From Ophelia neglecta (taxonomy: Eukaryota): a stretch of 64,000 nt of DNA. The notes beneath the pieces were generated by a model that had not been told where the DNA came from, ran no database searches, and saw only the letters and a program-made list of their open reading frames with translations. The position numbers and the translations under genes were made by a program. Positions 16 through 62,548 of this stretch are shown here, one piece after another. How positions within the stretch are numbered: position 1 is the stretch's first letter; each line of letters begins with the position of its first letter. The stretch is from NCBI GenBank assembly GCA_965285935.1, contig OZ260663.1, positions 93,062,001 to 93,126,000 on the forward strand, written 5' to 3'.

Positions 16-1800
16 ACTCGACTGAGAGCTCAATCAACCTTTGTGGTGGTGAAGAAAAAGAGAAGGTGGTATACTTATCAGAGTCAGAAGGCATTCAGAT
101 CGTCTTAAACAACCCTAAACACAGTGTAAACTCTGCGTATTTCCTTCTTCTTTACGAAAGTGAGTGACAATTGAATACATATTTGTATTGTACAAACACG
201 CATTATGTGAAAAAAAGAATGTGGGACATTCTAAATGTTTCGACCTATGTGTCAATAGAATTAATTTAATGATGTCTATCATATCATTCAGCCGTTGGAA
301 ATTTAATGAATACAGTTTTTTAGTGTTACTATTGAGTATGTTTTTTAATTTTAAGTTATCGGGTGTCTAAGTTACATACCACCAGAGGGCGCTGTTATTG
401 AGCGATACAAAAGTGATATATTGGTGGAGTGTCCAGATACCGGAAGTGGTTGGAAAGTATCGTGTGACGGGACGCGATGGCAAGTAGAAGGAAACGTCAC
501 AAACTGCACTAAAGCAGGTCGGTACAATATGTCAACGGGAGATAATATTTTGCTATAGATTGCAAAGTTGAAATCTAAGTTAGGACATAATCATTATACA
601 TTAAACAAATTATACACATTCATTAAATAATATGGAATATTATTTTAGCCACAGTTGAGAAGCCGTCCGTATCCATTGAAACCCAATTAGAGCGTAGTAG
701 CCTGACCTTATCACAAGGTGATGAACACGACTTTTTATTAAAGATTGACAGAAGCGCTTTTTTTTCTGGGATTAAAACAAGGTTCATCTCCCGAAATATA
801 TCATCATCTGGTTTTTCATATTTCACCATTTTTTGCAGTAATTATTTGATATCTTTCGAATATTTGTTCATTAAACGAATTGATAAACGTTCTGGTTTTT
901 TTTCTAGGACTCGTGATTGCTTTCTTTTTATCTATTGCTGTTCTCATAGCAGTCATTATCCTTGTGGTTGGCATTGTATGCCTTCGAAGGTAAGTGATGA
1001 GTTGGTCAAATGACATCTTGGAACTGATCTCTTCCAGGCAAAACTGGCATAATGAGCATATAGATCATATCTATAACTTTTTTAAAAATATGTTAATACC
1101 CCTTTCACGGTTTTTTTCTCTACATTTTCAAGCAAAGCCAAGCCACAGATCTATATGAATTTTTAGTAAAATGATAAATATAGCCAAAAATAAAATCACA
1201 TGCCCCTTTCTATATTTGTTTCTTTTCAGGAGGCAAGAAACCGGATCACGGTCAAGGCGGGATTCATTGATGGACTCTACGAAACGCATGTCAACTTTGG
1301 GATATACAGATAGAGAACAGTTCCCCATGCTAAGAAACAACGAAGAGGGTGAGCAATGGTTTCCCCACGAAAGGGGATATGCTACAACCGCCCAGAGGAA
1401 CGCGGTTGGCCCTCCGGGCGCCGTGCCGCCCAGGGGGAGGTTTCCACCACTACCACTTCCACCCACGGATACATTCCCTGACGCCGGGCACTGTACTATC
1501 CACGGGACACTTAGCCGTGACCGGTTTCAACGGGATAGTGTTCAGACAACACAGCCTTTCACCGAGCAGCGTTCGTCTAATGACTGGCCTAATTCCTTAC
1601 GGCGCACACGCAGTAACGGTAAAACCAAGGACCATTTCTACCATGAGTTGGATCCGGAACATACCAATGTTCCTATTGGGCTCCCACCGGATCACACAGC
1701 ATCCGACCTGGAAGCATACGGCAGGGACCAATCTGTGGCCCATCTTCCAGATGTACTCTCCTCTTCCTCAAGTGGGCCAACCAAGTGTGACAACGTTTGA
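16..1800 (+). CDS. Receptor copy A1, 5'-partial: CUB C-half, sushi-like module, stalk, TM, cytoplasmic tail
   Basis: Exons 16-159, 356-517, 649-717, 908-989, 1230-1800 with GT-AG introns and consistent phases. TM GLVIAFFLSIAVLIAVIILVVGIVCLRR; tail has FPPLPLPP and KDHFYHELDPEH. E1-E3 lie upstream of the window. Confidence 0.85.
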
Positions 1801-2777
1801 ATGTCCCATCTTTTTAGAGTTGCAATGTAAATGCACTGCAAAAGGCATTATGTGGATTCGGAACTTTTCATGCTGTTTCTGTTTATAATAACGCATTCGC
1901 CATCTATTCATGTTGATATATTCATCCTCTTTCGACAAGAAAGCATAGTGATCGCACTTTGCATGATTTAATTCAAACTAAAATTAATCCATGAACGAGA
2001 TTACAATGTCTGGATTTCATTCACATTGGCATGTGGGGATATTCAATTGAGGAGTATTCACTCATACCTTCTTGAGGAGTATTCTACTGCGTTTGATTAT
2101 AACAAGTGGTTATACACGAAGCATTTATAAATACAATGCCCTTAGTTGATATCTTGCTTTACTGGATAAGTGTGATACAGATGATGGGAGCTATGTACAA
2201 GATATAATCCGTGCTTTCTATATATCATTTATCTTGGCTGTCCGCTATGGATGTAATACAACCAATGAAGTCATGTGCTGTTGGATTGAAGGACAAGCCC
2301 TGAAGAAGTACCAGTGGCCAATCTACCAAAGAACTACAGTTTGAGAAACAAAACAACAACCAAATAATAAATTCTGATTTGCATCAGGACACACTGTGAC
2401 ATTGGATGAAATAAGTTGTTAATATGCCTCAGTGTCTGATGGCTCTGTCCCGTATGACGTAGTTCCATATACGGTCTTAAGACATGAGAACGTGCTTTAC
2501 TTTCTTATATTCAGCAGTTAGCTTGACATGCATGTCAGAACAATGCGTGATATAGACAGGAATGGAAGGAGATAACTTGAAGTTAAAAAACGTCGTAAAT
2601 ACATTAACATAAAACATTATTGCCAAAACGTAGAATTATGCCTCAAATTTCGCATCGAATGTAATATTTCAAATTCTTTACTTATAAGCTTATATTACTG
2701 ACTTGGGTGTTGCCCTTTGACTTTCAGTATTATATAGACAGCCTTTCTTTTTTCGTGTCCTAGAATAAGTGAGCGGC

Positions 2778-2892
2778 GAGCCGCGTGAGTGCTGCGCACT
2801 GCGCCGGCGCTATGTTTACCACCCATTGCTTTGCGCCGCGGTACTGGGAACATTAAGTTCTGATACTGACACTACCAGTCTGTGTAGGAATA
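2778..2892 (+). promoter_or_regulatory. Conserved upstream GC-rich palindromic element (before A2)
   Basis: Matches the consensus GAGTGNTGCGCAYTGCGCCGGCGC..ACCACCCATTGC..GCGCCGCGG..AGTTCTGATACTGACACTACCA shared by the other first-exon upstream regions. Confidence 0.7.
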
Positions 2893-2920
2893 GTAGCTTT
2901 AAAATAAGCACATTTTTAAC

Positions 2921-5900
2921 ATGGATACGCAATTAAAAGACTTCATTATTAGTCTTATAATCATCGCATTATGGATACCAACAGGAATCTCGAGTAAGTA
3001 CAGTCTATTTATTATCAATTGAAAGGGAAGGCCATCATAACAAATACTGATCAAATTGGTCTGTTTGCACACATACCGAGAATACGTGGCAATCCCGCCT
3101 AGATCGAGCCACGGTTTGAGTTAAACATTCGGAGATAGAACGCCGCTAATGCGTGCAAAGAACCAATTGTATTGAGGTGACATATTTTATTTCGGTGGAT
3201 GATGAAATCTGTTTTTATATCGATTATAAAATTTATGTACACTAGTCACAGCACAAAAATGGCCTCCTATTGGTATTAACTAGTATACATCTTAACGAAA
3301 ATACACCTATATATTCCTAGTCCATGGTATTCATAGAGGCGGTGCGATATCACATGTAGAATTAAGCATACTTAAGGACAAATTGACGTGTACCCATCTG
3401 ACCACTACCTGTTCTTCTTTTTCTCGCCCTACTCACATTTATTCACAACCAGATAATGCAGCTGTTATTGTTATTGTTACAAGTAAATAACTTATTAGAG
3501 AATAGCCCAGAAACAGCCCGAAATGCTACTTTTACAAATAAAAAATGCTGTAATTTGGAATTTTCTCGGCCTATCTTTATGGTGGATAAAAGAATGATGC
3601 CACAAAAGACAAGTTGCAGAACTAGTGTTATTTTGTAACAACTACAGAACAAGTGATATTTAAATAAAGAGAGAATGCCATGCCTCATTCTCGATTTCTT
3701 TTTTTGGTTATTCTACCGAGCGTCCTCTCTTTTCGGAGATATCGATCACCCATTTGGAAAATAAAAATATAATATGATGTGCTATATAATGTTATGTTAA
3801 ATTGTGTTTTGCCTGACGTCGACAATTACAATTTAAGTATATCTCAAAAATGATTTCAATAAAAGCAATGAGAAAGCTGCCGAATCAGTCTTAATATAAT
3901 AGGAGTAGATATTGTGAATGTATAGTCACAATGTGTAAGTAGCCTTGATTATCACTGGTCCCGCTAAGGTAGTAGAGATGCATATTATAAACATCTCCGG
4001 TGAAAAGGCCCATGTCACAAAATGTATCACTGGTTATTATTATTAATATAACACATTGTTGTCATATGGCATTAGCTCATTGTAAAATAATAAAATTCGC
4101 GTTATTTTGGCAGTTTGCATTTATCTTTTATATGTGGATTTAATAATATTATTTACAAAATACACATGTACTGTGTGACTTGGCATATTAGTGACGCTTC
4201 GGCTTTAAAGACTACATATTTTGAAAAGTAAGCAGCGAAATATAAAACTGAAACTAGCAATAATTTTCTCGATTTACTCAAAAAACGACACAAATACTGA
4301 GATAATTAAACGCTACAATTCCCCAACACAGGCTTTGTCATTTTTTATTTGGCACATGGAATATCTCAAAAGTTGGTTTATATAAACGGGCCTTCTATTT
4401 TGAAATAGACAAGTTGATACATTCACGATCCAGACTTTCTGCAACTAGTTTCAGAGTTTCAGGATGTAAATCCCGCAAAATGAACACCGTTGTTCAAAAT
4501 AACTTTGTGCACTGTGTAGTTAATTGGACAATGTAGCTGACAATAATCCAATGACCAGTTTTCTGTCCCTAGTATGTTTTTGCCCATGTCTTTGTTTAAT
4601 CTCCCCAATGTAGTTGCCAGGAGCGGGCGGCGCGGCGCGGCGATGCGTTGTGCGTCTTGGTGAAGCGGCTCTTGGCAAAGCGTCGCAATGCTTTGCCTGG
4701 CGTCTCGTTCGGAAATATCAAACACGGAAAATTAGTTATAGACTTTAACCTGCACATCATTATATATACCTCGTCAAAGAAATAGTGAAAACTCAACATT
4801 AGTTCCTTGTAATCGCTTATAATTAATGTTTGTCTGGAAATATTGATCAGACTGCATTTTTGTATATGTACTGAGCATGGCGGAAACATTCTATGATCTT
4901 TTGTGATTATCCGAGTGGTACTTTCATTTATATTTTCAATTATCTATTATTAAAACTGTATTTTGTTCTAGTCCCGCCTTTGACAGGCTGAAACATATAC
5001 TTTAAACATGATTCGTATCTACGCACACGTGCAAGTAGGAATGTAACCAATTTTTCCATAATACTTTTGTTTCCAGTGTGAGCATATGAGTTTGCTTCGT
5101 TGAAAAATCTGCGACGTTTCTATTAAACCCCTTCATTATTGAAGGCATACCGATAATATGCGTTCTCGTATACAACTGGAAATATGCCCACCAACCAATC
5201 TGCTTATTATTAATATTTCTAAACGAGTAATAAAGACATTTAGGTGATCTGTGGCTTGGAATTTGAGTAAGTCCCCGGCATCATCTTCCTTCAGCCCCAC
5301 ACACCACCCCCTTCTCTAAAATATTTCACCACTATATATTTCTGCTATTATTGTCGATAAGTATGACCTATATCCTGAGTATTCTATAGAAAACTAATAT
5401 GGTTTTGTAGTCGTGCTAAGGGAAATGAGCATGTGTATGCACTTACGGTATTTGAAGCTCAGATGGTTAGCTTTGTGTAAACGGAAATTGACAGAAGTGT
5501 TGCGACAGCTGTTTTGACCCTTTTGTATAGGCTAAAATGAACATAATGATGCCCATGCCAAAAGTGATTTATTCCCACTACATTATTGGGTTAAATAGAT
5601 TATACTGTTGGGCACATATTGCCAGATACTGTAGGCCATTTTGCATACAATATATCTTTCGCCACAGTTTTCGCTTTACACGAAAATGGGATTTAGTCAT
5701 TTAAGTTAAAGACCATTCGTTTTATATTTTAAAAAAGGTCAACGTACTTTGAGTAGTCGCCATACTTATATGAGCAGACAATATACAATGGTAATTGCAG
5801 GTAATCATTAAATAAGGAAATTTATTTGTCAGTTATTGGCAACGAATAAGACATTATAAATTCTTATTGAAATTGAGAAGAAGTCTTTGCAAACAAAGAG

Positions 5901-8900
5901 AATTTTCTAATTTGCTCAAACCTTAACAATAAGCCACGTGAATCGAACTCCGATGGCACTCCCGAATGGTTTTCAATGCAATAAAAGGGAATCGAGGCCT
6001 GGCGTAAAAACAATTTCAGATATCTTGAATATATTAATTAACATGGTCCAATACCAAATGCATTAGGAATTGTCAAGCGGATGTTCACAAAACGCCTATC
6101 TTAGTAAATGGGTGGTACACATTTTCATATCCTCTCACCCTATATCGAACTCTCGACATTTTATATTAATACTCTTCTCATATGCATTAAGCATGTGAGC
6201 TATTAATATTTTATCTATAATTATAACGTTTATTACACTATACTTTATTCTTTGATTTGACAGAAAAACAGGACGTTTGTTTTTGGAAAACATTAAACGC
6301 TACCTGTAGAGAGAATCAGATTATCCAAATGAAACATGCGTTGTACGGACGGATGGCGGCAGGGACCTGCATACCGGAAGACGTGGGATACAACATAGGA
6401 TGTCAGGTAGACGTGTTGGGTCACATGGACTCGGTTTGCTCAGGGAGACAGTCTTGTCAGCTAAGAGTGCCGGACGATTACCTGGCTAACATACAGAAGG
6501 CTTGCCTGCGAGGATTGGAGTCTTATTTACAGTTACAATACAACTGTATAGCTGGTGTGTTATACATTCGAGGTGTCGTTATACATTCGAGGTGTCAAAT
6601 CTAAATAAACTCCTGGAGTATTGTATGCATTACTAGGGCTATTCTACCGTGACACTTTGTAAGGCTTTTGTCTCTAATTGTGTTCATAATATTTGGTGAA
6701 TTTTGTATTATATGGCATAGCTCAGTAGCGGAGCTCCCTGTAAAACAAAATCACGGTTGATTGATTTGAATCTTTCAAGCAAGAAGTAACAATTTGATAA
6801 AACATAAACCAACATATGTGCTGAGGGGGGTGGGGGTTGGGAGGGGGGTGGAGGGGGTGGACATCTGGCCGTCATCAATTGAAGATGAGCCTTCGGATAA
6901 AGCACAATTAGTCTCATTATTCGGTTTTCTCATTAACTGCAATTGACAGTGTCATGTTTTCAATCATAAAGTAAATTATTAGTTGTTATGTATATGTATA
7001 TGCTTAGATATCATTTCCAGTACACACCTCGCCAACGCCGTGTGCAGGAAAAGCCATTAGAGTCACCGGAGAAAGTGGGTTACTGGCAAATGTCATAACG
7101 GAACGGACTAATCAAGGATCTACAGAATGTCCCTGGGAGGTCCGAGGGTCCCCTGGGCAGAAGGTCCGTTTAATATTACATGACAATGGGGTTTGGAATT
7201 CTCTTACATCAGATGAAGGCGACTCTGGAATTCCAGAGGCGGGAATCCAGCCACCAGAGAGGTCGAATATATGTCACATATACGCAAGGGTTACTGACGG
7301 TGAGGATTAAATTAAAAATCGTGTTGCCAATATATGAGTACGTTTTTTGTCACCAAATATATTGTGATGTTGAGGAATTATGACAAATCGTGAAGCTTTT
7401 GATGGACTCTTACGAGAGATGCCACATTACCCCTTGTGCTAACGATTTCAGATTGAGTGCTTGTTTGAAATACTTGGCCGGTGCACCATTAGTGTCAACT
7501 ATGTAATTTTCAAGCTATATGCTTTGTCTTCGACAGTTTCGGCTGAGACTTCCGTCACCCTTTGTAAGGGCGAGGCAAGAGAAAAAGAAATATACCTCTC
7601 GGAGACAGAGGGCGTTCGTGTTGCATTAACCGACCCTAAACACAGCAAGCACTCGTATTTTGTACTTCGTTACGAAGGTGAGTCTACATATTCAATGATT
7701 TAAAACGTGCTTAGATTTTCGTATAAGCCTGCGAAAATTTGTAAACTTCTGAGACATGATTATCAAACAATTTACCTCGACGTTAACTATCAATTAATTC
7801 AATATGTTATATACTCATGTTTTACGTTCGATTTGACATATTCGTTTGTCATTTCAGTAATAGGGTGTCTTACGTACAAAGCACCAGAGGGCGCGACAAC
7901 TGCACAACACGAAAACGATATAACAGTGACGTGTCCTGTGACTGGTAGTGAGTGGAAGGTGTCCTGCGATGGGACAAGGTGGCAAACAGAAGGAAACGTC
8001 ACAAACTGCACTGGAATAGGTTAGTGCAATAAATGCAAAGTAGCTCAAAGTTATGCTTCTGATTTCAAATTTTACTCATGTTCAACTCCAAACAATCAGT
8101 GGGGTCAGAAAGATCCAAACTATTAATAATGTTATAAAAACAATTCCAATTTTAATAGGGAATGGTATTGTAGACATTGTAGATGAGCCGTCCATGTCAC
8201 TGGAAGCGCCCTTGAAGGTCGGTCTAACCTTGTCCCAAGGTAATGATTAAGATCAGTATGTATATTACATAATAATAAGGGCTTATGATTGTCAATGTTA
8301 TGTATGTGTAATCGTATTTTGATGGCAATACCGTTAATACTCCAACACCTATTACAAAAATATCGGCTTTTAAGTTATCTTAGTAGTGTAACACTTGAAT
8401 TACAATGATAGTGTACCATTATTTTATATGCCTTAAGTTTTCAATTTAAATTGTTTAATTGTTAAACGTCTTTTATTTTTCCAGGGCTCGTGATTGCCTT
8501 CTTTCTATCTATTGCTGTTCTTATAGCAGTGATTATTCTGGTGATAGGAATTGTTGTACTTCGAAGGTAAGTTTCGTCACAGGACTTTGACTAATATGCT
8601 TCAGTATTGTATGTATCATTGAGACATAACTAAACCTCGGCATTGTATCTGTATTTATAACAAAATATAAGTTAGGGGATAGCCGAAACAAGAAACAAAG
8701 TACATACCATATATTGTGTCAATATGTCGTTGTAGGAGGCAAGGAACCGTGATAGAGTCCAGGGGAAATCCTTGGATGAACTCAACAGACCGCACGCCAC
8801 CTCCGCCATATACATGCAAGGAAAATGTTCCCATGCTGACAAAAGATAAGAGGACACAACAGGCTCTCCTGGAAAAGGGTTATATTGCTGCTCCCAAGAG

Positions 8901-9291
8901 ACAAGCGGCTGGGCTTCCGAACGCCATGGCGCCCAGTGGCAGATTTCCACCATTGCCTCTTCCACCGACAGAAGAGACCCACTGTACTGTTCATGGGACA
9001 TTAAACCGTGCTCGATATCCCCGCGATAGTAGCCATAACACTTTGACACGGCCTTATACCGAACATATGAATGAATCGCCCAGGTTCCTTCAGCACACAC
9101 GCAGTAAGAGTGACACCAAGAACCATTTCTACCACGAGTTGGACCCGGAACATATTAATGTTCGAGCAGGGCCGCCACGGGATACCAAGGACCCCGACAA
9201 TGACACGACCGACCTGGACACATCCGGGGCACCCCTTCCCGATGTTCTTTCGTCTTCTTCTATTGGGTTGAACAACTTGGACAATGTTTAA
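2921..9291 (+). CDS. Receptor copy A2: SP-SUEL lectin-CUB-sushi-like-TM-tail, 549 aa
   Basis: Exons 2921-2993 (MDTQLKDFIISLIIIALWIPTGIS, signal peptide), 6264-6554 (8-Cys SUEL fold with YGR, CSGRQSC, YL), 7021-7299, 7537-7677, 7858-8019, 8174-8239, 8485-8566, 8736-9291. Total 1650 nt, in frame, all GT-AG. Confidence 0.87.
6559..6596. repeat. 19-bp tandem duplication
   Basis: GTTATACATTCGAGGTGTC x2 immediately after the A2 exon-2 donor. Confidence 0.85.
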
Positions 9292-9816: not shown

Positions 9817-9934
9817 GAGTCGAGCGAGTGGTGCGCATTGCGCCGACGCTGTGTTTTCCACCCATTGCACTGCGCCGCGGCGATGTGAGCGCCGAGTTCT
9901 GATACTGACACTACCAGTTTGAGAAGGAATACTA
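9817..9934 (+). promoter_or_regulatory. Conserved upstream element (before A3)
   Basis: Same consensus; ends ~25 nt before ATG 9960. Confidence 0.7.
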
Positions 9935-9959
9935 GGTGGAAAATACACACAGTATTAAA

Positions 9960-12900
9960 ATGGATACCTTGATAAAACACTTGATTTCAAGCTTAATTAT
10001 CATGACACTGTGGATTAGAACGGGAAGCTCCAGTAAGTACTGAATATTTATCATCATTATAACAAATACCGACCACATTGCCTAATGAACGAGGAAAACA
10101 GGCAACGCGATGTCCTACTTAAATACAGCCTGGGTTTCCATTAGGCCTTGCTCATAGTACGCCGCTATGGCACCGGTCTTCGTATGCTAAGGATAAAATC
10201 CGTTGAGGTCACATTGATAATTTGTTTGGAGGGTTACAATGCCCAATCCCGGTCCTCCCAAAGCTGTTCTCTTCATTAGTATGTTGCCTTTTTTCAAATA
10301 TCATGGGTCTAATTAAATTTTTGTGAACCAGCCATAGCAAAGCGTGTAATAATGAGTCTTCAACCCTTTATGTACCACCAGGAAAGTTACTCTTCCATAA
10401 GTTAAACCTAAGTCCCCCCCCCACACCCTTTCTTCGCTAAATCGCACATTTATTCGCTTGATATTGGTTTAAACGTTTTAATATTCGCTTGATACTAAAC
10501 ATAATCTATCAATAAAAATCGTCTGACATTTTAACAATAATGACCATTCATTCCTTATGATTAGTTTATTTATGCATTTCGAAATTTTGGTGTAGCACTT
10601 CTTCATTAAACTGCAATTTTCGTTTAAACAGATCTTTGTTTCTTACGAGTTGAATGCAATGAAATACTACCGATCATGTGAATATTCATAGGGAACGCAC
10701 GTTTAAGAATGTTTAACCAAATGTGTCATATGATGGCAATTTATTATAAATGTTTAGCTATGTATTTCATTTCAAGATTATGCATTAAATTGCTGCGGTA
10801 TGATTGCGTAAGTCACAGACAATGTTTGACATTGTAAACATACTGGGAGGACCCCCTGCTGGAATATCCCCCAGGTCTCCTGCCACTCCAAGTTGCCGCA
10901 ATATCAAGCCTGCAATCTCCGAATTGCAATATGTTAAGTCCATAGAAAATATACATTATGATGAATACAAATGTTTGTATTTTAAGGGGGTCCACTGTCA
11001 TTGATTACATGTGCATTATACTGAGTGTAACCGTTATATTTTATTAGGACAAAAATGTTAAAAAAGAAGTGTTACCTTGCTAAATTATTTAACATTTCCT
11101 TTGCACAAAAAATATTTGGGTATCTCGGTAGTTATATCTACTAGAAGAGACAGTCATGTACTACACCTCCGTATAAAGGGTTTTCCAACCTCAATCATTT
11201 ATTTCATAGGGCAAATAATGACCATCGAGTATCTTTGTGTGTGTATAATTCATAGTACTTTTCCTCTATTAACCATTTGCGCATATTTGTATTTGTTGCG
11301 GTTATGGTGGTATGAATCAGTACCGTCCATTTCCGATATAAACTTAACAAGGATATGTATACTATACATCACTTAAAGCTATCATGCCGTAGATTAATCT
11401 CAATAGAAATCATTTAATACACGGGTGGTCACGGTCTAGCATGCACTCAGGATAACCGGGACTACTTTTAGGTTTTTAACCAAGCCCCAAAAGGTACATA
11501 ACAGAGCAATGCAATTACCAATAAAGCAACATATCCTCCCTCCCTCCCCCGTGCGGATGGGGGGGGGGATGGGCGGGCACGTTTACAAAGCTGGTCGTAC
11601 TGAGGGAAGGCCAAGTTTGGATATTCGCTAAATTTCGCAATACGTGGGAAATGGCTTGGTCGATGAATGCATTGGAATTGTTTTCTAGAATTAGGCCACT
11701 CAAGCCGGCTGCTTCTGCAAACAGGAAGATTGTAGACCAAAACAAACCTGCATTACTAATCATGGCCGCTTGCCCTATTACATCTGACTGCACCATTCGC
11801 CTATGAGCTGGAACTATTTCTATGCTAAACAAATAAATGCACATTTCTATTGTCTTTAATTTTTCGTATTCTGACACCAGAATTTGCTTTTGTATAAAGA
11901 GCCACAAAGAGCCGAAGCATTTCTTCTATCCAACGCATGGGAGTGCAGAGCGGCGCGGCCTTGTGCGGCGTGGTGCATCGTCGCGGTTTGGCGTAATATC
12001 TTGTTCGGCGCTTTCATACAAACTAAGGTAGCTCCTATGCATTTATGCTATCAACCTTTAACTCATAAAACACCTGATACAAATAAAATGACGGTAGCGC
12101 CTTGGAGAACATAACCTCACAACTAATGAGTTGTAATTGGTGACAACAACCTATTGCCAAATGATGAAAATGTCGATTTACTGAGAAATGATGTCAGATT
12201 ACTCTGTTTTGCCATAGTGTGCCTCTTTTTTCAACTAAGTTATATAATTAGGCGTTCAGTTTGGCAATTTCCTTCCGTACATTGAGCTCATAATGGTTGC
12301 TTACTACTGCACAACAATTGTATTATATCATTAGAATTACAAAAGACTAGTAAACACATATTTCTTCGCTGCTTTTTCAGAAGAACAGGACGTTTGTTTT
12401 TGGAGTACTTACAACGCTATATGTGAAGAGAACGAGGTTATACAAATGGAGCATGCGCTTTACGGACGGATGGCGGTGGGGAGCTGCATACCGGAGGACT
12501 TTGGGGTTATAATGGGTTGTCAGGTAGATGTGTTGAGTTACATGGACTCAGCTTGCTCTGGAAAACAGTCTTGTCAAATACGACTGCCGGACGATGACCT
12601 AGCGGAAGCACATCAACCTTGTCCACGAGGGTTGGAGTCCTATCTTCAGTTACAATACAACTGCATGGCTGGTAAGTATATTACGGTTTCTGAAATCAAT
12701 GTATATGTAAAGCTAGATCTTAATACATATTACCCCTAATACGAAAATGGTTTCTATTCGTTTTATATATAACTCAAGACCCCCATGATCGACGGACAAA
12801 TTTGGTAATTTCCTGCCAACTTGTAGTTGTTTGCTTTCTTTTTAACAACATAATCGCTGAAGCCGTCAAGAGAACAGGTAATGTCAATGAGCATTGAATT

Positions 12901-16966: not shown

Positions 16967-16993
16967 TAGATGGAAAATACACCCAGTATTACG

Positions 16994-23567: not shown

Positions 23568-23594
23568 TAGATGGAAAATACATGCAGTATTACG

Positions 23595-35482: not shown

Positions 35483-35531
<49 letters not shown>

Positions 35532-50766: not shown

Positions 50767-50890
50767 AGCCGCAAGCGGAGCGAGTGCTGCGCACTGCGCC
50801 GGCGCTATGCTTACCACCCATTGCATTGCGCCGCGGTACAGTGTGCATCGAGTTCTGATACTGACACTACCAGCTTGTGAAGGAATACTA
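50767..50890 (+). promoter_or_regulatory. Conserved upstream element (before A7); best hairpin example
   Basis: 5' arm 50788-50810, loop TTACCACCCATT, 3' arm 50823-50847. Confidence 0.72.
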
Positions 50891-51002
50891 CGTGGAACAC
50901 TGATATAAGGGGCGACAGATAATGATATGCGGAATATGAGAAGGTTATTGCATGATGCTTTATGAGAGAGTTCAGTGTTCGGAATAAATACCGAATATTA
51001 CA

Positions 51003-54000
51003 ATGGATAAACTGCTGAAGGACTTCATTCTACGCGTTGTGATCATGGCAATATGGCTACCAACAGTGTGCTCGAGTAAGTAATGTAAATACATTATCAT
51101 TTTTCAAGGAACGCCATCTTGCGCAGTAACCGACAGTGTTGCTCTGCGGGCTAATATAACTCGGACTGGAGGCGTCATTTGAGTGACCTTAATCGAGTTT
51201 GTTCATATATTTGCTTATAGTGCACCGTTGATTGGCATTTTTTACGCAATATATTGTTTATATTGGGGTCACATTATTTATGTTACTGGAAATGAAACCA
51301 AGCAATGTGAACGATTAACTTTCTACGTCAAAAATGTTTGACATGCTATGCATTGAATACGTGTATGTGCAAACATATTTCGTGTACCAGTGCGAAAATA
51401 ACCAAATTGTTATCATAGAAGCCCCTAATGTTGTTTGTGAAATAAAATCACAATTAGAATATTCTAAACGAAAAGCAACCGTGACTGAACCAATATATTA
51501 TCAGATGGTATATCAGTTTAAGTTACACACAATTAACACAATGAGTCTGGTTGTATATCTTAATTCCCGTCCCAATATCATCAAGGCGTGTGTCATACCG
51601 AAATAACTATTTGCAGTGTATAACTTAATAAAATGTTTCCAGCTTTAGATAAAACACAAAGCCAAGTTTGCACATAAAGACTAATATTATCTTCTTCAGT
51701 ATAAACAAAAACCATTTAGTTTTCCCTCGATTAACGTGGGCAGCACATTAAAGATATCGCATATGTGTTTCTAACACGCATACTATTAGCATTTGTTTTG
51801 CATTTGCAGTAGAAGATGAAGTTTGTTTATGGAGTACATACGACGCTATATGTGACGAAAACGAAGTTATACAAATGGAGCATGCGCTCTACGGGCGGAT
51901 GTCGGTAGGACGCTGCATACCGGAGAACGTAGGTATCATGATGGGCTGTCAGGTGGACGTTTTGAGCTACTTGGATTCGGTTTGCTCTGGAAGACAAACG
52001 TGTCATCTAAGATTACCGCAAGATCTCTTAGCCTCCGAATATCAGCCCTGCCAACGAGGGTTGGAGTCCTACCTTCAGTTGAAATACAAATGTGTAACTG
52101 GTATGTAAACCAAACAAAGTTTAAAATGCCAACATTAATTTATTTAATATTAATACAAAGCCGGGAAGTTGCACAAATTACACGTTAACAAGACAAGATA
52201 TCTACAACGTCCTATAAAGGAGGAGGATTGGGATGGGGAGTTCATACTTACCTAGATATTCGAAATAAATTCAGGGTCACATTCAAAACGAGATAACATG
52301 ACCTATGTCCATGTCCTCAGCAGGTGGTTGTCTAATCTTATATTTATCTCCGCCAACGTGTTATCTGTCACGGCAGCTGCATTTATTTCAGTAAATGCAT
52401 CAATGAAAGTCTCTCCCCCTTAGATGCCATATTGCTTCTGTTGCGGTCTTACACATGTCAATATCCTTCTTCTAGCTCCATTACTCATTATTTAAGCACA
52501 TAACCTATTGTACGTGCAGACGTATATGCTAAAATTAACTGTTTTGTATTTACCAGCGCCATTATTTGAAAGTAATTCTTTACTTCGTGTTAACATTTCC
52601 TTGTTATTTCTAGTAAACGCCTCACCAAAACCATGTGCCGGTAATCCTATACCAGTCAAGGGAACTACAGGGATTTTGGCCAATTTCGTAACCGGACGAA
52701 CTGAGCAGGGATCGCAGGACTGTCCCTGGGAGGTACGGGGGTCGCCTGGACAAAGAATCCGCCTCATATTACATGACTACGGTGTTTGGACACATTCTAA
52801 ACCTCTGAGAGACGACTCTGGAGTCCATGACCTTGGAGTACTTCCACCAGAGAGGTCGGATATATGTCACATATACGCTCGGGTTACGGAAGGTAAGTCA
52901 TGTTTATTCAAAAAATAATTATTTTGCCCCTCATTGCAATATTTTTCGGTGTCCCATGACTGTGTTATCACGATAACATATGTCCTTTTGTTTATTGCCA
53001 GGCCATACAGAGAGTTCAGTCACTATTTGTGGCGGCGAGGTAAGAGAGAAAGTAGTATACCTCTCAGAGACAGAGGGCGTTCACATCGCCCTAACCGCCC
53101 CAAAACAAAGCAAGAACTCTGCGTATTTCATGCTTCGCTTTGAAAGTAAGTGAAACGGTCTCAAATTAATTTAAATAAAACAACAGCTGTTTTCCCCCCA
53201 GAAAAATCATTTAAATAATCACAGTTAAATGTATCCAGTCAAATGTAATGCAATTGAGTAGTTTTTATATCATTTCAGTCATAGGGTGTCTAACGTACAC
53301 ACCACCAGAGGGTGCGGTAATTGTGCGTTATGAAAACGATATATCAGTAACTTGCCCATATACTGGAAGTGAGTGGAAGGTGGTATGTGATGGGACAAGG
53401 TGGCAAACAGAAGGAAACGTCACAAACTGTACTGAGACACGTAAGTGTAATAAAAGGTTTAACCGGAAATAAATTGTTTACCAGTGATTCTATATTTATT
53501 TGAATTAAGGAATGTTATCATTATAATCATATTTTAGATCTTGAAAAGGCGGAATTGGAAAGAAAAAAAGAGTTGCCGGTTTCCAGTGAAGCGGTGTTTC
53601 AGGGTGAACTTACCTTATCTCAAGGTGATGATCAAGAACGAAATGTTGATTCAAATGATGTCAACACTCGTTAATAACGTACCCTTTTTGTGAAGAGGCC
53701 TTTCGTGCAGTATGCACACAATATAGTAAAATGGTTCTTAGCAACACATTCGGCATCAGTTTTAATATTAGATTTGTAAATATATTTGAAATATAATCAT
53801 GTGAAGTCTTTTCAAATGCATTTTATCTTTGACATCGGAACTAAATAATAGTCTACTTATATTTCCAGGACTCGTGATTGCATTCTTTTTATCAATTGCG
53901 GTACTCATAGCGGTCATTATTATGGTGATCGGCATTGTTGTCCTCCGAAGGTAAGTGGCGCGTGTCGTTAGAAGATTCTTTGATCCGATTTCCACAGAAC

Positions 54001-54712
54001 TACGCTCTTGTATTCTGTGCATAACCTTTTCTTTGTTTTCTATTATCACTTTTAACGTGTTTTCAACAATTCCATGGTCTTGCACACGTAAGATGTGGGT
54101 GGGGTTAAGTTTGCATAAAATTTATTGTCTCTGGGGGCTAACCGAAATAAGAAAAAATCATGCACCCTATATTTCGAAACATATGTTTGCAGGAGGCAAG
54201 TGTCGGTGATAGAATCAAACCTGGGATATAGCAGAAAGGAACATTTCCCCATGCTCACAACAGATCAGAGAGAACAAGAGTCTCTTCGAGACCGGGGTTA
54301 CACGACTACCGCACATCTGTCCGCGGCTGTACCACCGGGCACCAGGACATCCCGTGGGAAATTACCACCACTACCACTACCACCGACGTCATCATTCGCA
54401 GAAGCCGACCACTGTAATATCCACGGGTCACTAAGTGGTGGCCGCTGTCCGCGGGATAGGAACCAGACAACACAGTCTTTCATCGAACAGACTCCATCTA
54501 ATGAGTGGCCAAATTCCTTACGCAGTTACGGTAAAACCAAGAACCATTTCTACCACGAGTTGGACCCGGAACATACCAGTATTCATACAGAGCCCCCACT
54601 GGTTAATGCAGATTTCGAAACAGATACATTAGTCGGGGTTGAACACGTAGCCCCACTGCCGGATGTACTGTTCGCATCCGCAATTGGGCATAGCGAATAC
54701 GGTGCAGTTTAA
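51003..54712 (+). CDS. Receptor copy A7, 545 aa
   Basis: Exons 51003-51075, 51810-52100, 52614-52892, 53002-53145, 53279-53440, 53538-53624, 53869-53950, 54193-54712. Total 1638 nt, in frame; ends ...HSEYGAV*. Confidence 0.88.
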
Positions 54713-55485: not shown

Positions 55486-55610
55486 TGAGACGCCAGCTCA
55501 GCACCTGGTGCGCACTGCGCCGGCGCTGTGTGTGCCACCCATTGCACCGCGCCGCGCTACTGTGTACATCGAGTTCTGATACTGACATTGCTTTGTGCAG
55601 GCATAGTACG
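55486..55610 (+). promoter_or_regulatory. Conserved upstream element (before A8)
   Basis: GGTGCGCACTGCGCCGGCGC..CCACCCATTGCACCGCGCCGCG..ATCGAGTTCTGATACTGACA. Confidence 0.68.
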
Positions 55611-55722
55611 TGGAATTCGGATATAATGAGCGACAGATCATAATATGAGGATTAAAACATTAGGATTACAAATTGATGGTGTGTGAGAGAGCGTATTGTT
55701 TTGAAAAATACACGGATTTACA

Positions 55723-58700
55723 ATGGAAATACTGGTGAAATACTTCATTATACGCGTTGTGATCATGGCAATATGGCCAACTACAGTTAGCTCAAGTAAG
55801 TATTGAAATAACATTATCATATGACCAGGGACGCCATCTTGCGCACGTACTGGCCATAACGGTGTCTGTGTTAATATCCATAGTATAGGAGCTACGTGTC
55901 AGTACACGATTTGAGTGATACGTTTTCTCATAGTTTGCCCCGAATGTGTAATATTCTTTTAAGGAAATAGTCGGCTCTATAGAGGTCATTTTAGTTATAT
56001 TGTGAAAATGGAGCATTGCATATTATGTGAACGCTTAAAATGTCCTCGTTAAAACTATATTTGATGCTATGTAAATGGCATATAGTCGTATTTTTCTTAA
56101 ATCTGTTCAAACAAAATTGGTCTCTCTATATATATATAACCAACAATGATTTATAGGCAATAAATTCTCAATACGTTTTGTGTCTTAAATCTCGCGAATA
56201 GTACACCGTTTCGCTCGAGCCAGGTGTCCGGCCATGATATGCCTCCTTGTATTAATGTGCCCACTGCCGCGCTTTTCCTTGCATGCTTCCATTCCAATAT
56301 TGGGTAAAACCTCGGGCACATAAATCATTTAAAAGAATATAACTAATCAAACAATGTTTTTAGAGAATACGACAGAATTTGAGGCTTTGTCTAAAGACAT
56401 AGTATACATTACAGTGTTTTTTTGACCATTGGTCCTTAAGATATGTTTAATAAATATAAAAACGAAAGGGAGTGGATACCCGGCAGACAATACAAATCAA
56501 TTAATCAGAAATAATCCATCAGATAATCGGTCAGATATCACCAGATGCAAACAAAATCAATTCCCAAACAGCATACCAACGTGTAATGAACATTAAAAAA
56601 GAGAAATACGTAAATGGTCCCTGCATATTTAAGGGGAAAAGTAACCCTGCAATAGATGCTTTTAATGCACATGCATATCATTTCAATGTCAGTTCGAACT
56701 ATATGAGTATCAATGTATGCAATGTAAATAGTGTTTGGTAACCACTGGTAAAAATAATTATAATCCCGGTTTTATTGGCAAACTTTAATACAAAGTTTAT
56801 CAGATATTTATAATGAAACAATGTCGTTTGTAGCAAAATAATGGTTATGTAAACAAATCGTATCGCGAGGTAAATAATTTTATACAGTACGTGTGCTTTC
56901 TTACTGCTCATCACACTGTGAAGGAACAGGGAAAACACAGTACACAATTTACAGAATGATGAAATATTACGATTAAATATTCCGGTTTGTAATTATTGGT
57001 ATATATTTTTTAAGGATTATTAAAACAATAACCATCTCTTAAGCGAAAGCAATGTTTGATGCCTTTACATTTACTCAAAGAAATTTTCACTGTAGAAAGG
57101 AGCTTTTAAGTGTTCCTGTCGTTGCTTCCGGGTAACACATATGGATGTCCGTTAATATACGTTATCGATCTGACGATCTGCCACTGAGTGAATAGAATGT
57201 CAACAGCACAGCCTGTTAAACAGAGGATCTAGTCTGCAATACCCCTATTTAGCTCATTTACCTAGTTCACTAGTTTACTCAAATTTAGAGCGGGGTCGTC
57301 GATGTATGTGTGGAATATTCAACGTTTAATTCCAGCTGGTAGTGATATAATAAGCTAGTGCTACCTGTTTGTTGTGCTTACTATATTGTTTATGATAATA
57401 TAAGCCCACTATGAAGTTTTAAAAAGTCGCATGTTAAGCGCCAGCACGGTACGTAAAACACTTACGTGTCTTATTAAAGTAATCGTATGATACTCTACCC
57501 ACCGTATGAAATAAATAACTTCCGTTTGAGTAACTTCTGACCAGAATACTGTCTATCCTTGAGTAGAGACTACTTGTATAACGACATTCATCGAAAGTGA
57601 GCACACATTGATCTATTGACTTCATTAAACTGCAAATAATAAATATATTTCACAACTGTAATAAAATATGAATAGGTAGAACCTAGATCACAATCAACTC
57701 ACAGGGACTACTGGTATCCATTTGATTCTATAATATATGCTGAATATACCCACGCATGTTGCCTATATATAGTTTGCTCTGCAGCCGTTTAGCGGCTGTT
57801 AGAGAGCTCTATCAATGGAAGCCCCGTGGGTTATTTTTCCTTGGATTTATATTTTGTACATCATTTAAAGTACACGTCTTTATGGCAGTAAAGATGCGTT
57901 CCAATAGTGTATTTCCCATTCCTTAATAGACATACAACATACAATAGACATAACTGTAATATTATTCTCATGACCTCAGCAAATGGGGTGTATACATTTA
58001 GGCTTTGTTTTTTCTGTCAGATCCTATGCTTTTCGGTCTGATTGCAACAAAAGACACGTAGCACTGGTGTTTGAATTACAGGATTGCTGTTAAAGGTAAA
58101 AAACAAGCGATTATCAAATTCACAGATACATATTTCACCAGTTTATCTTGCGCCCGCAAAGCCCTGCGAGACAAGGCAGCCGCCAACCAGCAGGGGCAGC
58201 GATAAACAAATCTGTTTAAACCCTCATGGCGGCGGCAAAGCCACGACACGAATGCGCAGACGACAACTTACATCATGGACGCTTGTTGACTACTTCACAT
58301 TGCATGTGATATCTTATTTATACTGTTTATTATAAATTCCTGTACACGCTTATTTACTAGTAAATATGTGTACGTGATTGAAACTGGCGCTATCTATTAA
58401 ATTTGGACCGAATTAATTTATTATTCTTGGTTGCAGAAGAGCAAGACGTTTGTTTTTGGAATACACTAGACGCTACCTGCGAAGAAAATGAGGTAATACA
58501 TATGGAGCATGCGCTCTATGGGCGGATGTCAGTAGGTCAATGCATACCGGAGGACGCGGGTTACAGCTTGGGGTGTCAGGAAGACGTGTTGAGCTATTTG
58601 GACACAGTTTGCTCAGGCAGACAATCGTGCACGCTTAGGCTGCCGGATGAACATCTGGCCGATGAGCACCAGCCGTGTCCCCGAGGATTGGAGGCATACC

Positions 58701-61425
58701 TACATTTACAATACAAATGTATACCTGGTAAACATTGTACTTATTACATAAACATATCATTTTTTTATACTAATAGGACGATTATATATATAACATTCCG
58801 CTCCGGTTTACCTGTACTGTGCTCTAAATCATACCAAAATTAAAAGCACTCCTACAAACACATTAAAGTCATGTGTGAGTAAAGCCACCTCAAACAATAT
58901 TCATACAATATGTTGTTTAAAATCACAATTTAGCTTACCGGAAGCAGCAGAATGGAGGTGAATTATGTCGCTTAACAAATTTTCAATGTGTTAATATTAA
59001 AAATATGCGTGTCTCGCCGAATGTGTAAATTGTCATTAATAAGACCCCATTAAAAAAGTCCATCTCGTGCAGTTGATATTGTAATGTTAACCTATTTCTT
59101 CCCCTGGTCAAACTATTAACTTTTCAGCGGTCTGAAATTGACTAAGTTTTGTTTCTAGCTGTTATCAACTACACGAGAAAAAGTCCCGAATCTTCCTGGA
59201 TGGCATAGTGAATTTTGGACAACTCGTCTTCACAATGCATGAGACTGGAAATAAGCTGTGAATATGCTTGAAATATGGTTATTTCGTGCTTAAGGGTAAA
59301 ATTATTATTTCCAGTGCACGCTTCGCCAATCCCATGTGCTGACGATCCGATACCATGCACGGGGATAACTGGCTTACTGGCTAATAGCATAACGGGACGA
59401 ACTGGTCAGGGCTCTTCGAAATGCCCCTGGGAAGTCCATGGATCCGCTGGACAGAAGGTCCGCCTTACATTATTTGATTACGGGGCAGGTAATCTTCCCA
59501 CATCGGAAGAAGGGGACTCTGGAGTTATGGAACACGGAAGCCGACTATCAGAGAGGTCGGATATATGCCAAATATACGCCAGGGTTACTGAAGGTACGCC
59601 AAGATAGCAATGAATTTGTTTTCAAACATGGGCGTAGTTTTTATCAAAGGTTTCATTCCCACCAACGGTTTCAGGATTAATGTTAGTTTCATTTATTTGG
59701 AAGATGCAGCACAACTTTTTTATATCAACTGATAATGCGTTTGTGTTAACTAGATCATGCTGGGAGTTCTATTACTCTTTGTGGGGGAGAGGCAAGAGAA
59801 AAAATAGTGTATCTCTCGGAGACAGAAAGGGTTCAGATTGCCATTACCGACCCTATAAACGACCAATACCAGGCGTATTTTCTACTTCGTTACGAAAGTG
59901 AGTAACGATAACTATACATATCAACAACCATTATTTAGTTAAAATTGAATCTGAAATCGAGGCTACTGGAGACACAATTGTTACATCATTTACATTCGCT
60001 CCATTGTGGAATTATTCTTAGACCACCCTTCACAATGTATGAATCTAAATGCAATGCCACTGAGTATTTTTTGATCTACTTCAGTTATAGGGTGTCTTAA
60101 GTACATACCACCGGAAGGCGCTGTTATTGTGCGTCATGGTAATGATATATCAGTGACGTGCCCAAATACCGGAACTGGGTGGAGTGTTGTTTGCGATGGG
60201 TCACGGTGGCAAATACAAGGAAATGTCACAAACTGTACTGAAATCGGTAAGTACAAACATTGAAAGCAGAAAACCTACCTGCCATCGTCTTTTATTGAGC
60301 TTTACTCTACAGTGCAATCGCTTATAAGGAATTGTATTTTAGGTCCCCAAATGCTGGAAGTAGATAAACCAGGGCCACCTCTGTCCACTGAAGTGCGGTT
60401 GAAGGGTGGCCTTACATTATCTCAAGGTGACGAGTAAAGGCAGGATGTTGATTATCATATAAAGTCAACTGCCGTTTATGAAAAAAGTGCTCTTACCTAT
60501 AAATCCGATTGATACCTTTAGCTTTAAAGTTAACAATAGTAATTCTTTGAAATGTTCGAATATATATTGCTCCGAGATAGGAACTGACCAGTGCTACGTT
60601 TATTTCCAGGCCTCGTGATTGCATTCTTTTTATCAATTGCTATACTCATAGCAGTTATTATTATGGTGATCGGCATTGTTGTACTTCGAAGGTAAGTCGA
60701 GCGTTTCTTCACAAAAATCTATGATCCGATTTCCCGGGATGAATTGAGTGCATCTCCTTATATTTCAAGGTTTAATTATAATCAGATTTGATATGTATGT
60801 TTTCATAGTCAGGCATACTATATATAGAATGTTAAATCTGGACAAAATTGTTCGCGTCTTGGGTTAACCAAAATGTAAAGTCAAGTATATATCGTATATT
60901 TCATGATCATGATGTTGCAGGAGACCAGTCACCGTGATAGAAACAACTCCCGGATATAACTATAAAGAACACGTTCCAATGCTGACCAAAAATCAGAGGG
61001 CGCAGCAGTCACTCGGTGATAGGGGTTATACTACTACCGTCCAGAGACACGCAGCCGTTCCCCCGGGCGCCGTGACACCTCGAGGAAATTTACCGGCACT
61101 ACCACTACCACCTACGTCATCGTTTTCAGACTCCGGACGTTGTAACATCCACGGAACAGTTAGCCGTGACTGCTATCCACAGCATAGTATCCAGGCCACA
61201 CAGCCTTTCATTCAACCGTGCTCATCCAATGAGTGGCAAGACTCCTTACGGCGCTCGCGAAATAACTGTAAACCCAAAGACCATTTCTACCACGAGTTGG
61301 ATCCGGAGAATACCAGAGTTAACACGGGGCCGCCACTGCATAGCACGGAATCCGATATCAAGAGACTTGGTACGGATGTTCTCGGGGCCCCTCTTCCTGA
61401 TGTACTATCCGATTCCTCGCGTTGA
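55723..61425 (+). CDS. Receptor copy A8, 539 aa
   Basis: Exons 55723-55795, 58437-58727, 59315-59593, 59754-59897, 60085-60246, 60343-60426, 60610-60691, 60921-61425. Total 1620 nt, in frame. Confidence 0.88.
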
Positions 61426-61900: not shown

Positions 61901-62018
61901 GAGCCACGGGCACAGCGAGTGTTGCGCACTGCACCGTCGTTATATTCACCACCCATAGCAGTGCGAACTGGTACAGGGCATTGAGTTCTGATTACCAGTT
62001 TGTGCACAAATACTACGT
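61901..62018 (+). promoter_or_regulatory. Conserved upstream element (before B5)
   Basis: GCGAGTGTTGCGCACTGCACCGTCG..ACCACCCATAGCAGTGCGAACTGGTACAG..GAGTTCTGAT. Confidence 0.6.
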
Positions 62019-62047
62019 AGAATAATGGACAAATACATATAATTACA

Positions 62048-62120
62048 GTGAATACCCTGTTGGAATACTTCGTTCTTGTCTTAGCGAAAATGGCGATTTG
62101 GAAAACAACAGGAAGTCCTA
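62048..62120 (+). pseudogene. Orphan B-type first exon (B5)
   Basis: (V)NTLLEYFVLVLAKMAIWKTTGSP, 73 nt with intact donor GTAAGT, but ATG changed to GTG; no B body before the next promoter element. Confidence 0.7.
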
Positions 62121-62238
62121 GTAAGTATTGTGTCATTTATCAGTTATGGGAGAAGTCATCTGGAACCGAGTCCAGTCGCTCCTTGATTTCTGAATATTAA
62201 AATGTGTGTCTACGAACAACTTATAATTGTGATATCGA

Positions 62239-62362
62239 GAGCCGCAAGCGGAGCGAGTGATGCGCACTGCGTCGGCGCTGCGTTGACCACCCATTGCATT
62301 GCGCCGCGGTACGGTGTGCATCGAGTTCTGATACTGACACTACCGGTCTGTGAAGGAATACT
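62239..62362 (+). promoter_or_regulatory. Conserved upstream element (before A9)
   Basis: Near-identical to the element before A7. Confidence 0.72.
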
Positions 62363-62475
62363 TCGTTGAACACTGATATAAGGAGCGACAGATAATGATA
62401 TGCGGATTAAAATAGGATTACAACAGGATGCTTTATGAAATAGTTCAGTGATTGGAATAAACACCGAATATTAGA

Positions 62476-62548
62476 ATGGATAAACTGCTGAAGGACTTCA
62501 TACTAGGCGTTGTGATCATGGCAATATGGCTACCAACAGCGTGCTCGA
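62476..62548 (+). CDS. First (signal-peptide) exon of receptor copy A9; the rest presumably lies beyond the window
   Basis: MDKLLKDFILGVVIMAIWLPTACS + A|GTAAGT; closely related to A7 E1. Confidence 0.75.

Follow-up and report, generated by a model that had tools for sequence, protein, structure and literature searches.

A large tandem cluster of SUEL-CUB-sushi genes encoding putative single-pass receptors with a shared 5′ element in Ophelia neglecta

In this study, a stretch of 64,000 nucleotides from the 762 Mb genome of Ophelia neglecta was analysed (assembly GCA_965285935.1, contig OZ260663.1, here named C5; C5:93062001-93126000). This whole stretch is called the window, and positions within it are counted from its first letter. 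It carries a head-to-tail array of genes for candidate type I membrane receptors with SUEL, CUB and sushi (CCP) domains. Self-BLASTN resolved tandem units of about 6.5 kb on the + strand with 66-96% DNA identity, and clustering of all stop-free + strand segments revealed that the same exon families recur in constant order. The + strand of the window holds seven complete genes (A, B, C, D, E, G and H), two genes cut by the window ends and five decayed relics. A splice-exact model was made for gene B as reference and then projected onto the other genes. All seven complete genes follow a common 8-exon plan, with GT-AG boundaries for all introns and intact open reading frames (ORFs) of 527-549 aa. 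The signal-peptide (SP) exon comprises 73 nt with 24 codons and a phase-1 donor (GTAAGT or GTGAGT), exons 2-6 are of phase 1-1, and the transmembrane (TM) exon leads from phase 1 to phase 2. No Pfam family was found for the remaining ORFs of the window. The genes are as follows, with exons given in the order SP, SUEL, CUB-N, CUB-C, sushi, stalk, TM and tail, each complete gene being preceded by a conserved non-coding 5′ block.

16-1800, + strand: gene 0, 3′ part only (CUB-C exon to stop); exons 16-159, 356-517, 655-717, 908-989, 1230-1800; all AG/GT-bounded and in frame; 5′ exons lie before the window
2779-9291, + strand: gene A, complete, 549 aa; 5′ block 2779-2895; SP 2921-2993, SUEL 6264-6554, CUB-N 7021-7299, CUB-C 7537-7677, sushi 7858-8019, stalk 8174-8239 (ambiguous acceptor), TM 8485-8566, tail 8736-9291
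9822-15731, + strand: gene B, complete, 537 aa, reference model; 5′ block 9822-9941; exons 9960-10032, 12381-12671, 13516-13794, 13881-14024, 14201-14362, 14462-14545, 14790-14871, 15233-15731
16858-22335, + strand: gene C, complete, 531 aa; 5′ block 16858-16975; exons 16994-17066, 19134-19418, 20156-20422, 20548-20691, 20868-21029, 21129-21212, 21439-21520, 21837-22335
23457-28853, + strand: gene D, complete, 528 aa; 5′ block 23457-23576; exons 23595-23667, 25506-25790, 26641-26907, 27031-27174, 27346-27507, 27604-27687, 27922-28003, 28364-28853
38902-42950, + strand: gene E, complete, 527 aa; 5′ block 38902-39018; exons 39133-39205, 40220-40510, 40877-41140, 41358-41501, 41674-41835, 41923-42006, 42209-42290, 42467-42950
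50772-54712, + strand: gene G, complete, 545 aa; 5′ block 50772-50900; exons 51003-51075, 51810-52100, 52614-52892, 53002-53145, 53279-53440, 53538-53624, 53869-53950, 54193-54712
55506-61425, + strand: gene H, complete, 539 aa; 5′ block 55506-55615; exons 55723-55795, 58437-58727, 59315-59593, 59754-59897, 60085-60246, 60343-60426, 60610-60691, 60921-61425
62245-62548, + strand: gene I, 5′ block and SP exon only, remainder beyond the window; 5′ block 62245-62373 with 91% identity to the gene G block; SP exon 62476-62548 with ATG, 24 codons and phase-1 GTAAGT donor

A preliminary description of this DNA, made from its letters, had already claimed a gene array with a shared 8-exon plan and the domain order SP-SUEL-CUB-CCP-TM-tail. 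Self-BLASTN, exon clustering and the splice-exact models confirm the array with its seven complete and two cut genes and five relics, and the intact models with their GT-AG introns bear out plan and order. The span given there begins at position 16, which is the acceptor of the CUB-C exon in gene 0, truncated by the window start, and ends at position 62548, the donor of the SP exon of gene I, which runs on past the window.

The copy number suggested by the window was greatly exceeded in the genome, with about 91-96 copies for each exon type searched. The tail exon gave 91 matches, all located at C5 92.53-93.52 Mb (0.99 Mb). In the same interval, 96 matches were obtained for the CUB-N exon, 93 of them open, and the SUEL exon was represented by 94 open matches and a broken one. 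The cluster comprises about 95 genes in about 1 Mb, and the 64-kb window is a slice of it. Up to 92.92 Mb the tail exons have minus orientation and from 92.94 Mb onwards plus orientation; the switch occurs near 92.93 Mb, and the cluster therefore consists of two arms transcribed away from a central point. These counts were taken from genome search tables; about one fifth of the cluster was read directly, the minus arm via 20 alternate 10-kb pieces. In these samples the exon plan was identical to that of the window, and the six genes for which an automatic model could be built between the SUEL exon and the stop codon were all intact. In a tree of the ectodomains, well-supported subfamilies track chromosomal position. 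One minus-arm gene (L021:2388-5637, C5 ~92.766 Mb) nests in the plus-arm clade of the window together with genes E and G (support 83/81), which hints at an inverted transfer between the arms.

Beyond the cluster, >50 further SUEL exons were detected, and often a single-exon CUB-like domain follows them at a distance of a few hundred bases. These SUEL exons are located at C1 ~16.3-16.4 Mb, at many sites of C2 and at C5 ~26, 34.8-35.2, 51.2, 67.9-68.1, 77.3, 80.2 and 104.8-105.0 Mb (loci L001-L008). The genome holds a wider SUEL-CUB superfamily, with about 50 looser relatives which carry the whole CUB in one exon and lack the CUB intron. Right past the plus arm, at C5:93585804-93616834, three SUEL exons with 47-49% identity to the SUEL of gene B are present, two of which have minus orientation; a tail exon to match them was not detected at this site. 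In other public assemblies, unannotated contigs of ENA ERZ25069296, ENA ERZ26859052 and NCBI GCA_029979845.1 carry SUEL and a single-exon CUB in unchanged order; the sushi exon is also present in ERZ26859052 and GCA_029979845.1 and the TM exon in ERZ26859052, and the ERZ25069296 contig ends after the CUB exon. The order SUEL-CUB-sushi(-TM) in three other assemblies means that the superfamily in its wider sense is not restricted to this genome.

Domain searches and fold predictions were made exon by exon, and exons were joined for the ORF check, the substitution rates and the tree. The SUEL exon exceeded the cutoff of Pfam PF02140 in 20 of 20 copies, of which seven belong to the window and 13 to the other arm (best E-value 1.5e-13); for gene B, it reached 41.8-42.9 bits at a cutoff of 31.4. 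Among solved rhamnose-binding lectin (RBL) structures, a profile of the family matched sea-urchin SUL-I best (7.7e-17), followed by the RBL domain of C. elegans LAT-1 (5e-10) and then by CSL2 and the latrophilins. The RBL/SUEL domain has an eight-cysteine pattern forming four disulfides (PMC10817417); in the exon family, the cysteines C5, C14, C35, C46, C58, C64 and C80 are invariant and C94 is nearly so. At the level of sequence, the SUEL assignment is certain.

Among the RBL motifs, YGR is kept (few copies have F for Y or Q/H for R), DPC is changed to QPC, and KYL to SYL or, in two copies, to AYL. In latrophilin-1, sugar binding by the RBL domain needs the Glu right after the first Cys (E42) and the Lys of KYL (K120), and even the conservative substitutions E42D, E42Q and K120R each abolish it (Vakonakis et al., PMC2430599). 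In all 20 copies, the residue after the first SUEL Cys is F, L, N, K or V, and the KYL Lys is replaced by Ser (Ala in two copies). Because both required residues are replaced throughout, the canonical rhamnose/galactose site is, as read from these positions, absent from the SUEL domain, and the name lectin, under which the family had been introduced, is doubtful. With the Glu and the Lys missing, a protein ligand is therefore more likely; Vakonakis et al. argue that RBL domains of transmembrane receptors take non-carbohydrate ligands (PMC2430599).

The CUB domain is divergent and encoded by two exons, CUB-N and CUB-C, which are parted by a phase-1 intron; its four cysteines are conserved. The CUB-N exon alone scored 12.3-12.6 bits at a Pfam PF00431 cutoff of 21.4 (E ~0.2), and the CUB-C exon gave no match. 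A CUB-N profile searched in the PDB found Neto2 as best match (E 0.044), and cubilin and TSG-6, all of them weak, CUB proteins being three of the top four. Within the genome, the CUB-N exon matched the single-exon CUB paralogs with 1.5e-10 to 3.3e-10. The paralog L002 is recognised as CUB by Pfam with 28.7 bits (cutoff 21.4), several others score slightly under the cutoff, and the alignment places the CUB-N and CUB-C exons of the window colinear with the N- and C-terminal parts of these paralog domains. An AlphaFold2 model of the paralog L004, made with an alignment including the window exons, had a predicted local distance difference test (pLDDT) value of 86, and its top ~38 Foldseek matches were all CUB, among them TSG-6, MASP-1, C1s, spermadhesin, cubilin, neuropilin, PCPE-1 and Neto2. 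Predicted as a two-chain complex, CUB-N and CUB-C scored 0.32 at a mark of 0.34, with controls at 0.00-0.02, which counts neither way. The CUB assignment is supported by the cysteine pattern, by transitive homology and by the predicted fold of a paralog.

For the sushi exon (53 aa), no match to Pfam PF00084 was obtained up to an E-value of 10, and a sequence profile found no CCP match in the PDB. Invariant in 22 copies are C3, Y6, P9, G11, C25, W32, C36, G38, W41 and C50. The AlphaFold2 model had a pLDDT of 84, and in a Foldseek-independent scan of 48,161 chains CCP modules made up ~37 of the top 50 rows, including those of MASP, C1s and PAPP-A, with Z 4.0-4.6 and a root-mean-square deviation of 2.3-3.0 Å over 51-53 of 53 residues. 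The low absolute Z values are due to the tiny size of the domain; Foldseek gave no significant E-value for the 53-aa model. A sushi/CCP module is supported by the cysteine pattern and the predicted fold.

The sushi exon is followed by a stalk with a conserved LTLSQG end, one hydrophobic TM helix and a tail of ~165-185 aa. The proteins have a single hydrophobic TM window, and the ectodomain contains NxT sequons. The tail is probably disordered. It had been described as variable, which applies to its neutral linkers (ratio of nonsynonymous to synonymous differences, pN/pS, 0.6-1.07) but not to the strongly conserved motif islands between them: KDHFYHELDPEH with a pN/pS of 0.07, APLPDVLS with 0.17, GYNxKEHFPML with 0.20 and FPPLPLPP with 0.38. 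The conserved motifs are FPPLP(L)PP, (F)YxELDPEH, an invariant Tyr in R-x-Y-T-x-T, KExxPML and a C-terminal LPDVLS, and the majority of them are conserved across both cluster arms. We take FPPLP(L)PP to be of the EVH1, SH3 or WW type and (F)YxELDPEH of the YxxL type for SH2 binding or AP-2 sorting.

An exhaustive phmmer search of 1.84 billion representative proteins with the tail returned 0 matches, word-index protein searches with one tail and a 21-sequence tail profile returned nothing among proteins of 0.55-1.75 times the query length, and the PDB gave nothing either. Pfam assigned none of 21 tails to a family, the EVA1/FAM176 family included. Immunoreceptor tyrosine-based activation motifs (ITAMs) have the form YxxL/I-x6-8-YxxL/I, and the inhibitory motifs (ITIMs) the form (S/I/V/L)xYxx(I/V/L). 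The tail carries a lone YxxL (F-Y-H-E-L), with position -2 occupied by His, and lacks a further YxxL at the distance typical of an ITAM, so that neither pattern is present; TIR and death features were likewise not detected in the tail.

Ahead of every gene, a non-coding block of ~125 bp lies ~35-130 nt upstream of the start codon (e.g. 50772-50900). Between paralogs it is 82% identical, whereas fourfold-degenerate sites in the same pairs of genes reach 53%, and it is equally conserved between the two arms (81%). Of 91 candidate matches in the genome 40 were scored, and all 40 belong to the cluster and share the orientation of their arm. In the relics the block is decayed. It matches no Rfam family and shows no convincing RNA structure (-7.5 kcal/mol, negligible covariation), and TATA-like sequences occur immediately upstream of it in several genes. 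The block is a previously unreported feature, newly found here, and most likely represents a putative shared core promoter or 5′ leader. Between block and ATG, a conserved insertion of ~95 nt is present in genes E, G, H and I (38902-39132, 50772-51002, 55506-55722 and 62245-62475); genes A-D are without it.

Pairwise Nei-Gojobori comparison of the seven complete window genes yielded a mean number of synonymous substitutions per site (dS) of 0.87 and a ratio of nonsynonymous to synonymous rates (dN/dS) of 0.26. By exon, dN/dS was 0.19 for SUEL, 0.24 for CUB-N, 0.23 for CUB-C, 0.20 for sushi, 0.39 for the stalk, 0.05 for TM and 0.35 for the tail. No positive selection was detected when single exons, 12-codon windows and young pairs were examined; all ectodomain windows stayed at ≤0.66. 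The most relaxed ectodomain stretches are an indel-rich CUB loop, presumably the L5 ligand-binding loop of CUB motifs, and the stalk. The expectation of variable ligand-facing loops held for these two stretches and for nothing further. With every exon under purifying selection, the likeness to diversifying immune or allorecognition clusters that the preliminary description had drawn is not upheld. The youngest pair, B-C, has a dS of 0.22 and an ectodomain dN/dS of 0.19. Its divergence is mosaic, with a dS of 0.07 in the tail and 0.29 in the ectodomain (13484-17634 compared with 20123-24234), a pattern suggestive of gene conversion or unequal crossing-over that affected the 3′ half of the unit.

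The genes are old, selectively maintained and not rapidly diversifying. Being intact, old and under purifying selection, they are therefore working genes. Uncollapsed haplotypes, a concern raised earlier for this array, are impossible, because the copies differ by 9-42% in protein and have the mean dS given above. Positions 15000-20900, with their unique intron and intergenic parts, are covered by tiling short-read contigs that were obtained from three sequencing runs of a single sample; the runs possibly stem from the source sample of the assembly and therefore lend weak independent support.

Birth-and-death evolution, as proposed earlier, is a fair description, with intact genes, decayed relics and position-linked subfamilies coexisting. 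The pieces of the five relics are closer to subfamilies of the other arm than to the neighbouring intact genes:

16395-16500, + strand: relic 1, dead SP exon copy; homologous start is ATA, TAA before the donor
23035-23122, + strand: relic 2, dead SP exon copy; 98% identity to relic 1, without ATG
29329-29549, + strand: relic 3, 5′ part, decayed 5′ block and SP-like exon without ATG; block with 77% identity to the gene G block
36948-37348, + strand: relic 3, 3′ part, frameshifted tail-exon remnant split across two frames; best match a tail of minus-arm type, 44% identity
43660-43898, + strand: relic 4, 5′ part, 5′ block with internal deletion and intact-looking SP exon (43826-43898)
48189-48373, + strand: relic 4, frameshifted SUEL exon fragment; tblastn pieces 48225-48305 and 48308-48373 in different frames, best matches in minus-arm subfamilies
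49635-50069, + strand: relic 4, divergent tail-like exon; only the first ~60 residues align (44% identity), polyproline and YxEL motifs lost; CUB, sushi and TM exons missing
61914-62135, + strand: relic 5, decayed 5′ block and SP-like exon with GTG as start codon; block with 75% identity to the gene G block

Between gene D and relic 3, the decayed sequence contains a 173-bp unit twice (91% match, 31909-32246) and an (AT)22 microsatellite (35486-35529). Another block, in intron 1 of genes B, C and D (11910-12055, 18304-18455 and 24929-25082), had been considered as SP exon. It is GC-rich, ~150 bp long and exon-like, ends with AAG|GT and has no usable frame or start codon. It was rejected, because this end puts a stop in the needed phase and because an ATG is absent from it in genes C and D; another exon family supplied the true SP exons. 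The block may be a relic exon or merely reflect recent shared ancestry.

Full-text literature searches found no described receptor with a SUEL-CUB-sushi-TM-tail architecture, and the tail is without sequence relative, in agreement with the earlier statement that no known receptor has this order. Several known systems share parts of it. EVA-1/EVA1C (C21orf63), a Slit co-receptor, is likewise a single-pass type I protein with a SUEL/RBL ectodomain; its RBL domains are without the sugar-binding Glu and/or Lys and have been argued to bind protein ligands (PMC2430599). However, EVA-1 has two RBL domains, no CUB or sushi and no tandem set of ~95 copies, whereas the window genes have one RBL exon each. 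Latrophilins (ADGRL, LAT-1) also present an N-terminal RBL domain on a cell-surface receptor, and the SUEL family profile matched the RBL structures of LAT-1, ADGRL3, latrophilin-1 and ADGRL2 with 5e-10 to 8.5e-4. In contrast to the single TM helix and CUB-sushi pair of the window genes, they are seven-transmembrane adhesion G-protein-coupled receptors with olfactomedin, HormR and GAIN domains; neither GAIN nor a seven-helix region was found in the window genes, which have one hydrophobic TM segment and end ~170 aa later. With the soluble RBLs (SUEL, SUL-I, CSL), the family has the fold, the eight-cysteine pattern and the YGR motif in common, but these proteins are secreted, with tandem or multimeric RBL domains and intact DPC and KYL, while the window family has QPC, SYL/AYL and no Glu after the first Cys.

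A CUB followed directly by a CCP, as found here, is also present in C1r/C1s/MASP, the SEZ6 family and CSMD, of which SEZ6 is a type I membrane protein as well. These proteins differ in having no SUEL, in their multiple CUB/CCP repeats, in a protease domain or an unrelated tail, and in not being tandemly expanded. NETO1/2, SOL-1 and LEV-10 are small single-pass type I auxiliary subunits whose CUBs bind other membrane proteins; they have a CUB-CUB-LDLa set and are single genes, and in the window family nothing points to an ion-channel partner. Clustered protocadherins form large tandem arrays of recognition ectodomains; the units have individual promoters that carry a conserved element, and their variable exons are spliced to shared constant exons. 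The window family likewise has a conserved element per gene, whose promoter role is putative, as would be any promoter choice, but the ectodomains are unrelated, and each window gene, unlike the protocadherins, has its own TM and tail exons and stop codon.

On balance, we consider it probable that the cluster is a lineage-expanded family of functional type I receptors forming a recognition or adhesion repertoire for protein ligands under a common 5′ element. Each gene would encode a 24-aa signal peptide, a SUEL/RBL domain, a split divergent CUB, a short sushi/CCP, a stalk, one TM helix and a tail. The ectodomain would most likely bind protein or a non-canonical glycan, as argued for the RBL domains of EVA-1 and latrophilin, and the specificity of each paralog may reside in variable SUEL loops, the indel-rich CUB loop and the sushi surface. 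The tail would act via its conserved short motifs, thereby possibly coupling ligand binding to the actin cytoskeleton or to endocytosis, and the 5′ block would place all members under one regulatory logic.

Several points weigh against this reading. Loss of the canonical sugar-binding pair leaves room for another glycan-binding mode. CUB and sushi stay under the Pfam thresholds on the window's own exons, with single-exon queries, and the CUB fold was modelled for a paralog encoded at a different locus and not for a window gene. The EVH1, SH3, SH2 and AP-2 readings of the tail motifs are based on consensus patterns. In older pairs dS is near-saturated, and positive selection at few sites could escape pairwise counts. 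Gene conversion could contribute to the high identity of the 5′ block, the B-C pair having a mosaic history, and both splicing and the transcription start relative to this block are modelled only.

Other explanations are less probable, in the descending order immune glycan recognition, cell-identity code and gamete recognition. In the first, the cluster would be an innate-immune repertoire for pattern recognition, with SUEL on microbial glycans, CUB-CCP in a complement-like role and paralogs covering many patterns. The very large lineage-specific expansion fits such a role, expansions of this kind being typical of invertebrate immune gene families, and so does the CUB-CCP pair, which is the module pair of C1r/C1s/MASP, proteins that appear among the structural matches. 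Soluble RBL/SUEL lectins also bind lipopolysaccharide and act in invertebrate immunity (PMC10817417). However, the SUEL domains have the Glu and the Lys for sugar binding replaced in every one of the 20 copies, diversifying selection was not detected, and in the tail neither a Pfam family nor TIR, death, ITAM or ITIM features were recognised. We regard this explanation as unlikely and favour the recognition or adhesion repertoire for protein ligands over glycan pattern recognition.

A code for cell identity or for self/non-self, in which cells would choose one or few of the ~95 genes via the 125-bp element of each gene, in the manner of clustered protocadherin promoters, and the ectodomains would pair homophilically or with matched partners, appears still less probable. 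This element, cluster-specific and conserved well beyond the neutral level, and the big clustered set of adhesion-type ectodomains agree with a code of this kind, and the high constraint on the TM helix is compatible with oligomerisation. But shared constant exons are missing, every gene having its own tail exon, a conserved promoter fits plain co-regulation too, and allorecognition loci are usually polymorphic and fast-evolving, which is not so between these paralogs. It is similarly improbable that the family constitutes a combinatorial identity code of a kind so far undescribed, an invertebrate analogue of clustered protocadherins or Dscam with SUEL-CUB-sushi ectodomains, in which the 125-bp copy of each gene would govern its choice and the invariant TM helix would serve hetero-oligomerisation.

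A role of the proteins in gamete recognition and fertilisation is very improbable. The domain types alone would suggest it, SUEL having first been found in sea-urchin eggs and CUB and sushi occurring in sperm-egg proteins, along with the sea-urchin RBL as best solved-structure match of the SUEL exon. Reproductive recognition proteins are, however, usually fast-evolving, whereas ectodomain dN/dS is ~0.2 throughout, and ~95 maintained paralogs would be unusual for such a role. A non-functional array of dead duplicates or an assembly artefact of uncollapsed haplotypes is strongly disfavoured and for practical purposes excluded: the window does hold five decayed relics, but it also has seven intact ORFs with canonical splice sites, dN/dS ~0.26 at dS 0.87 is unattainable for neutral pseudogenes, 93 of 96 CUB-N and 94 of 95 SUEL exons in the cluster are open, the protein differences far exceed allelic divergence, and unique spacers are tiled by short-read contigs.

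If expressed as modelled, the recognition or adhesion repertoire described here would be among the largest single-locus receptor families of this genome, with ~95 genes in 1 Mb and >50 looser relatives elsewhere. It would provide a natural experiment on SUEL-fold domains as non-lectin binding modules on receptors. The sharply conserved tail motifs would be direct handles for partner tests, and the regulatory element of each gene would make the question of co-expression versus gene choice directly testable.

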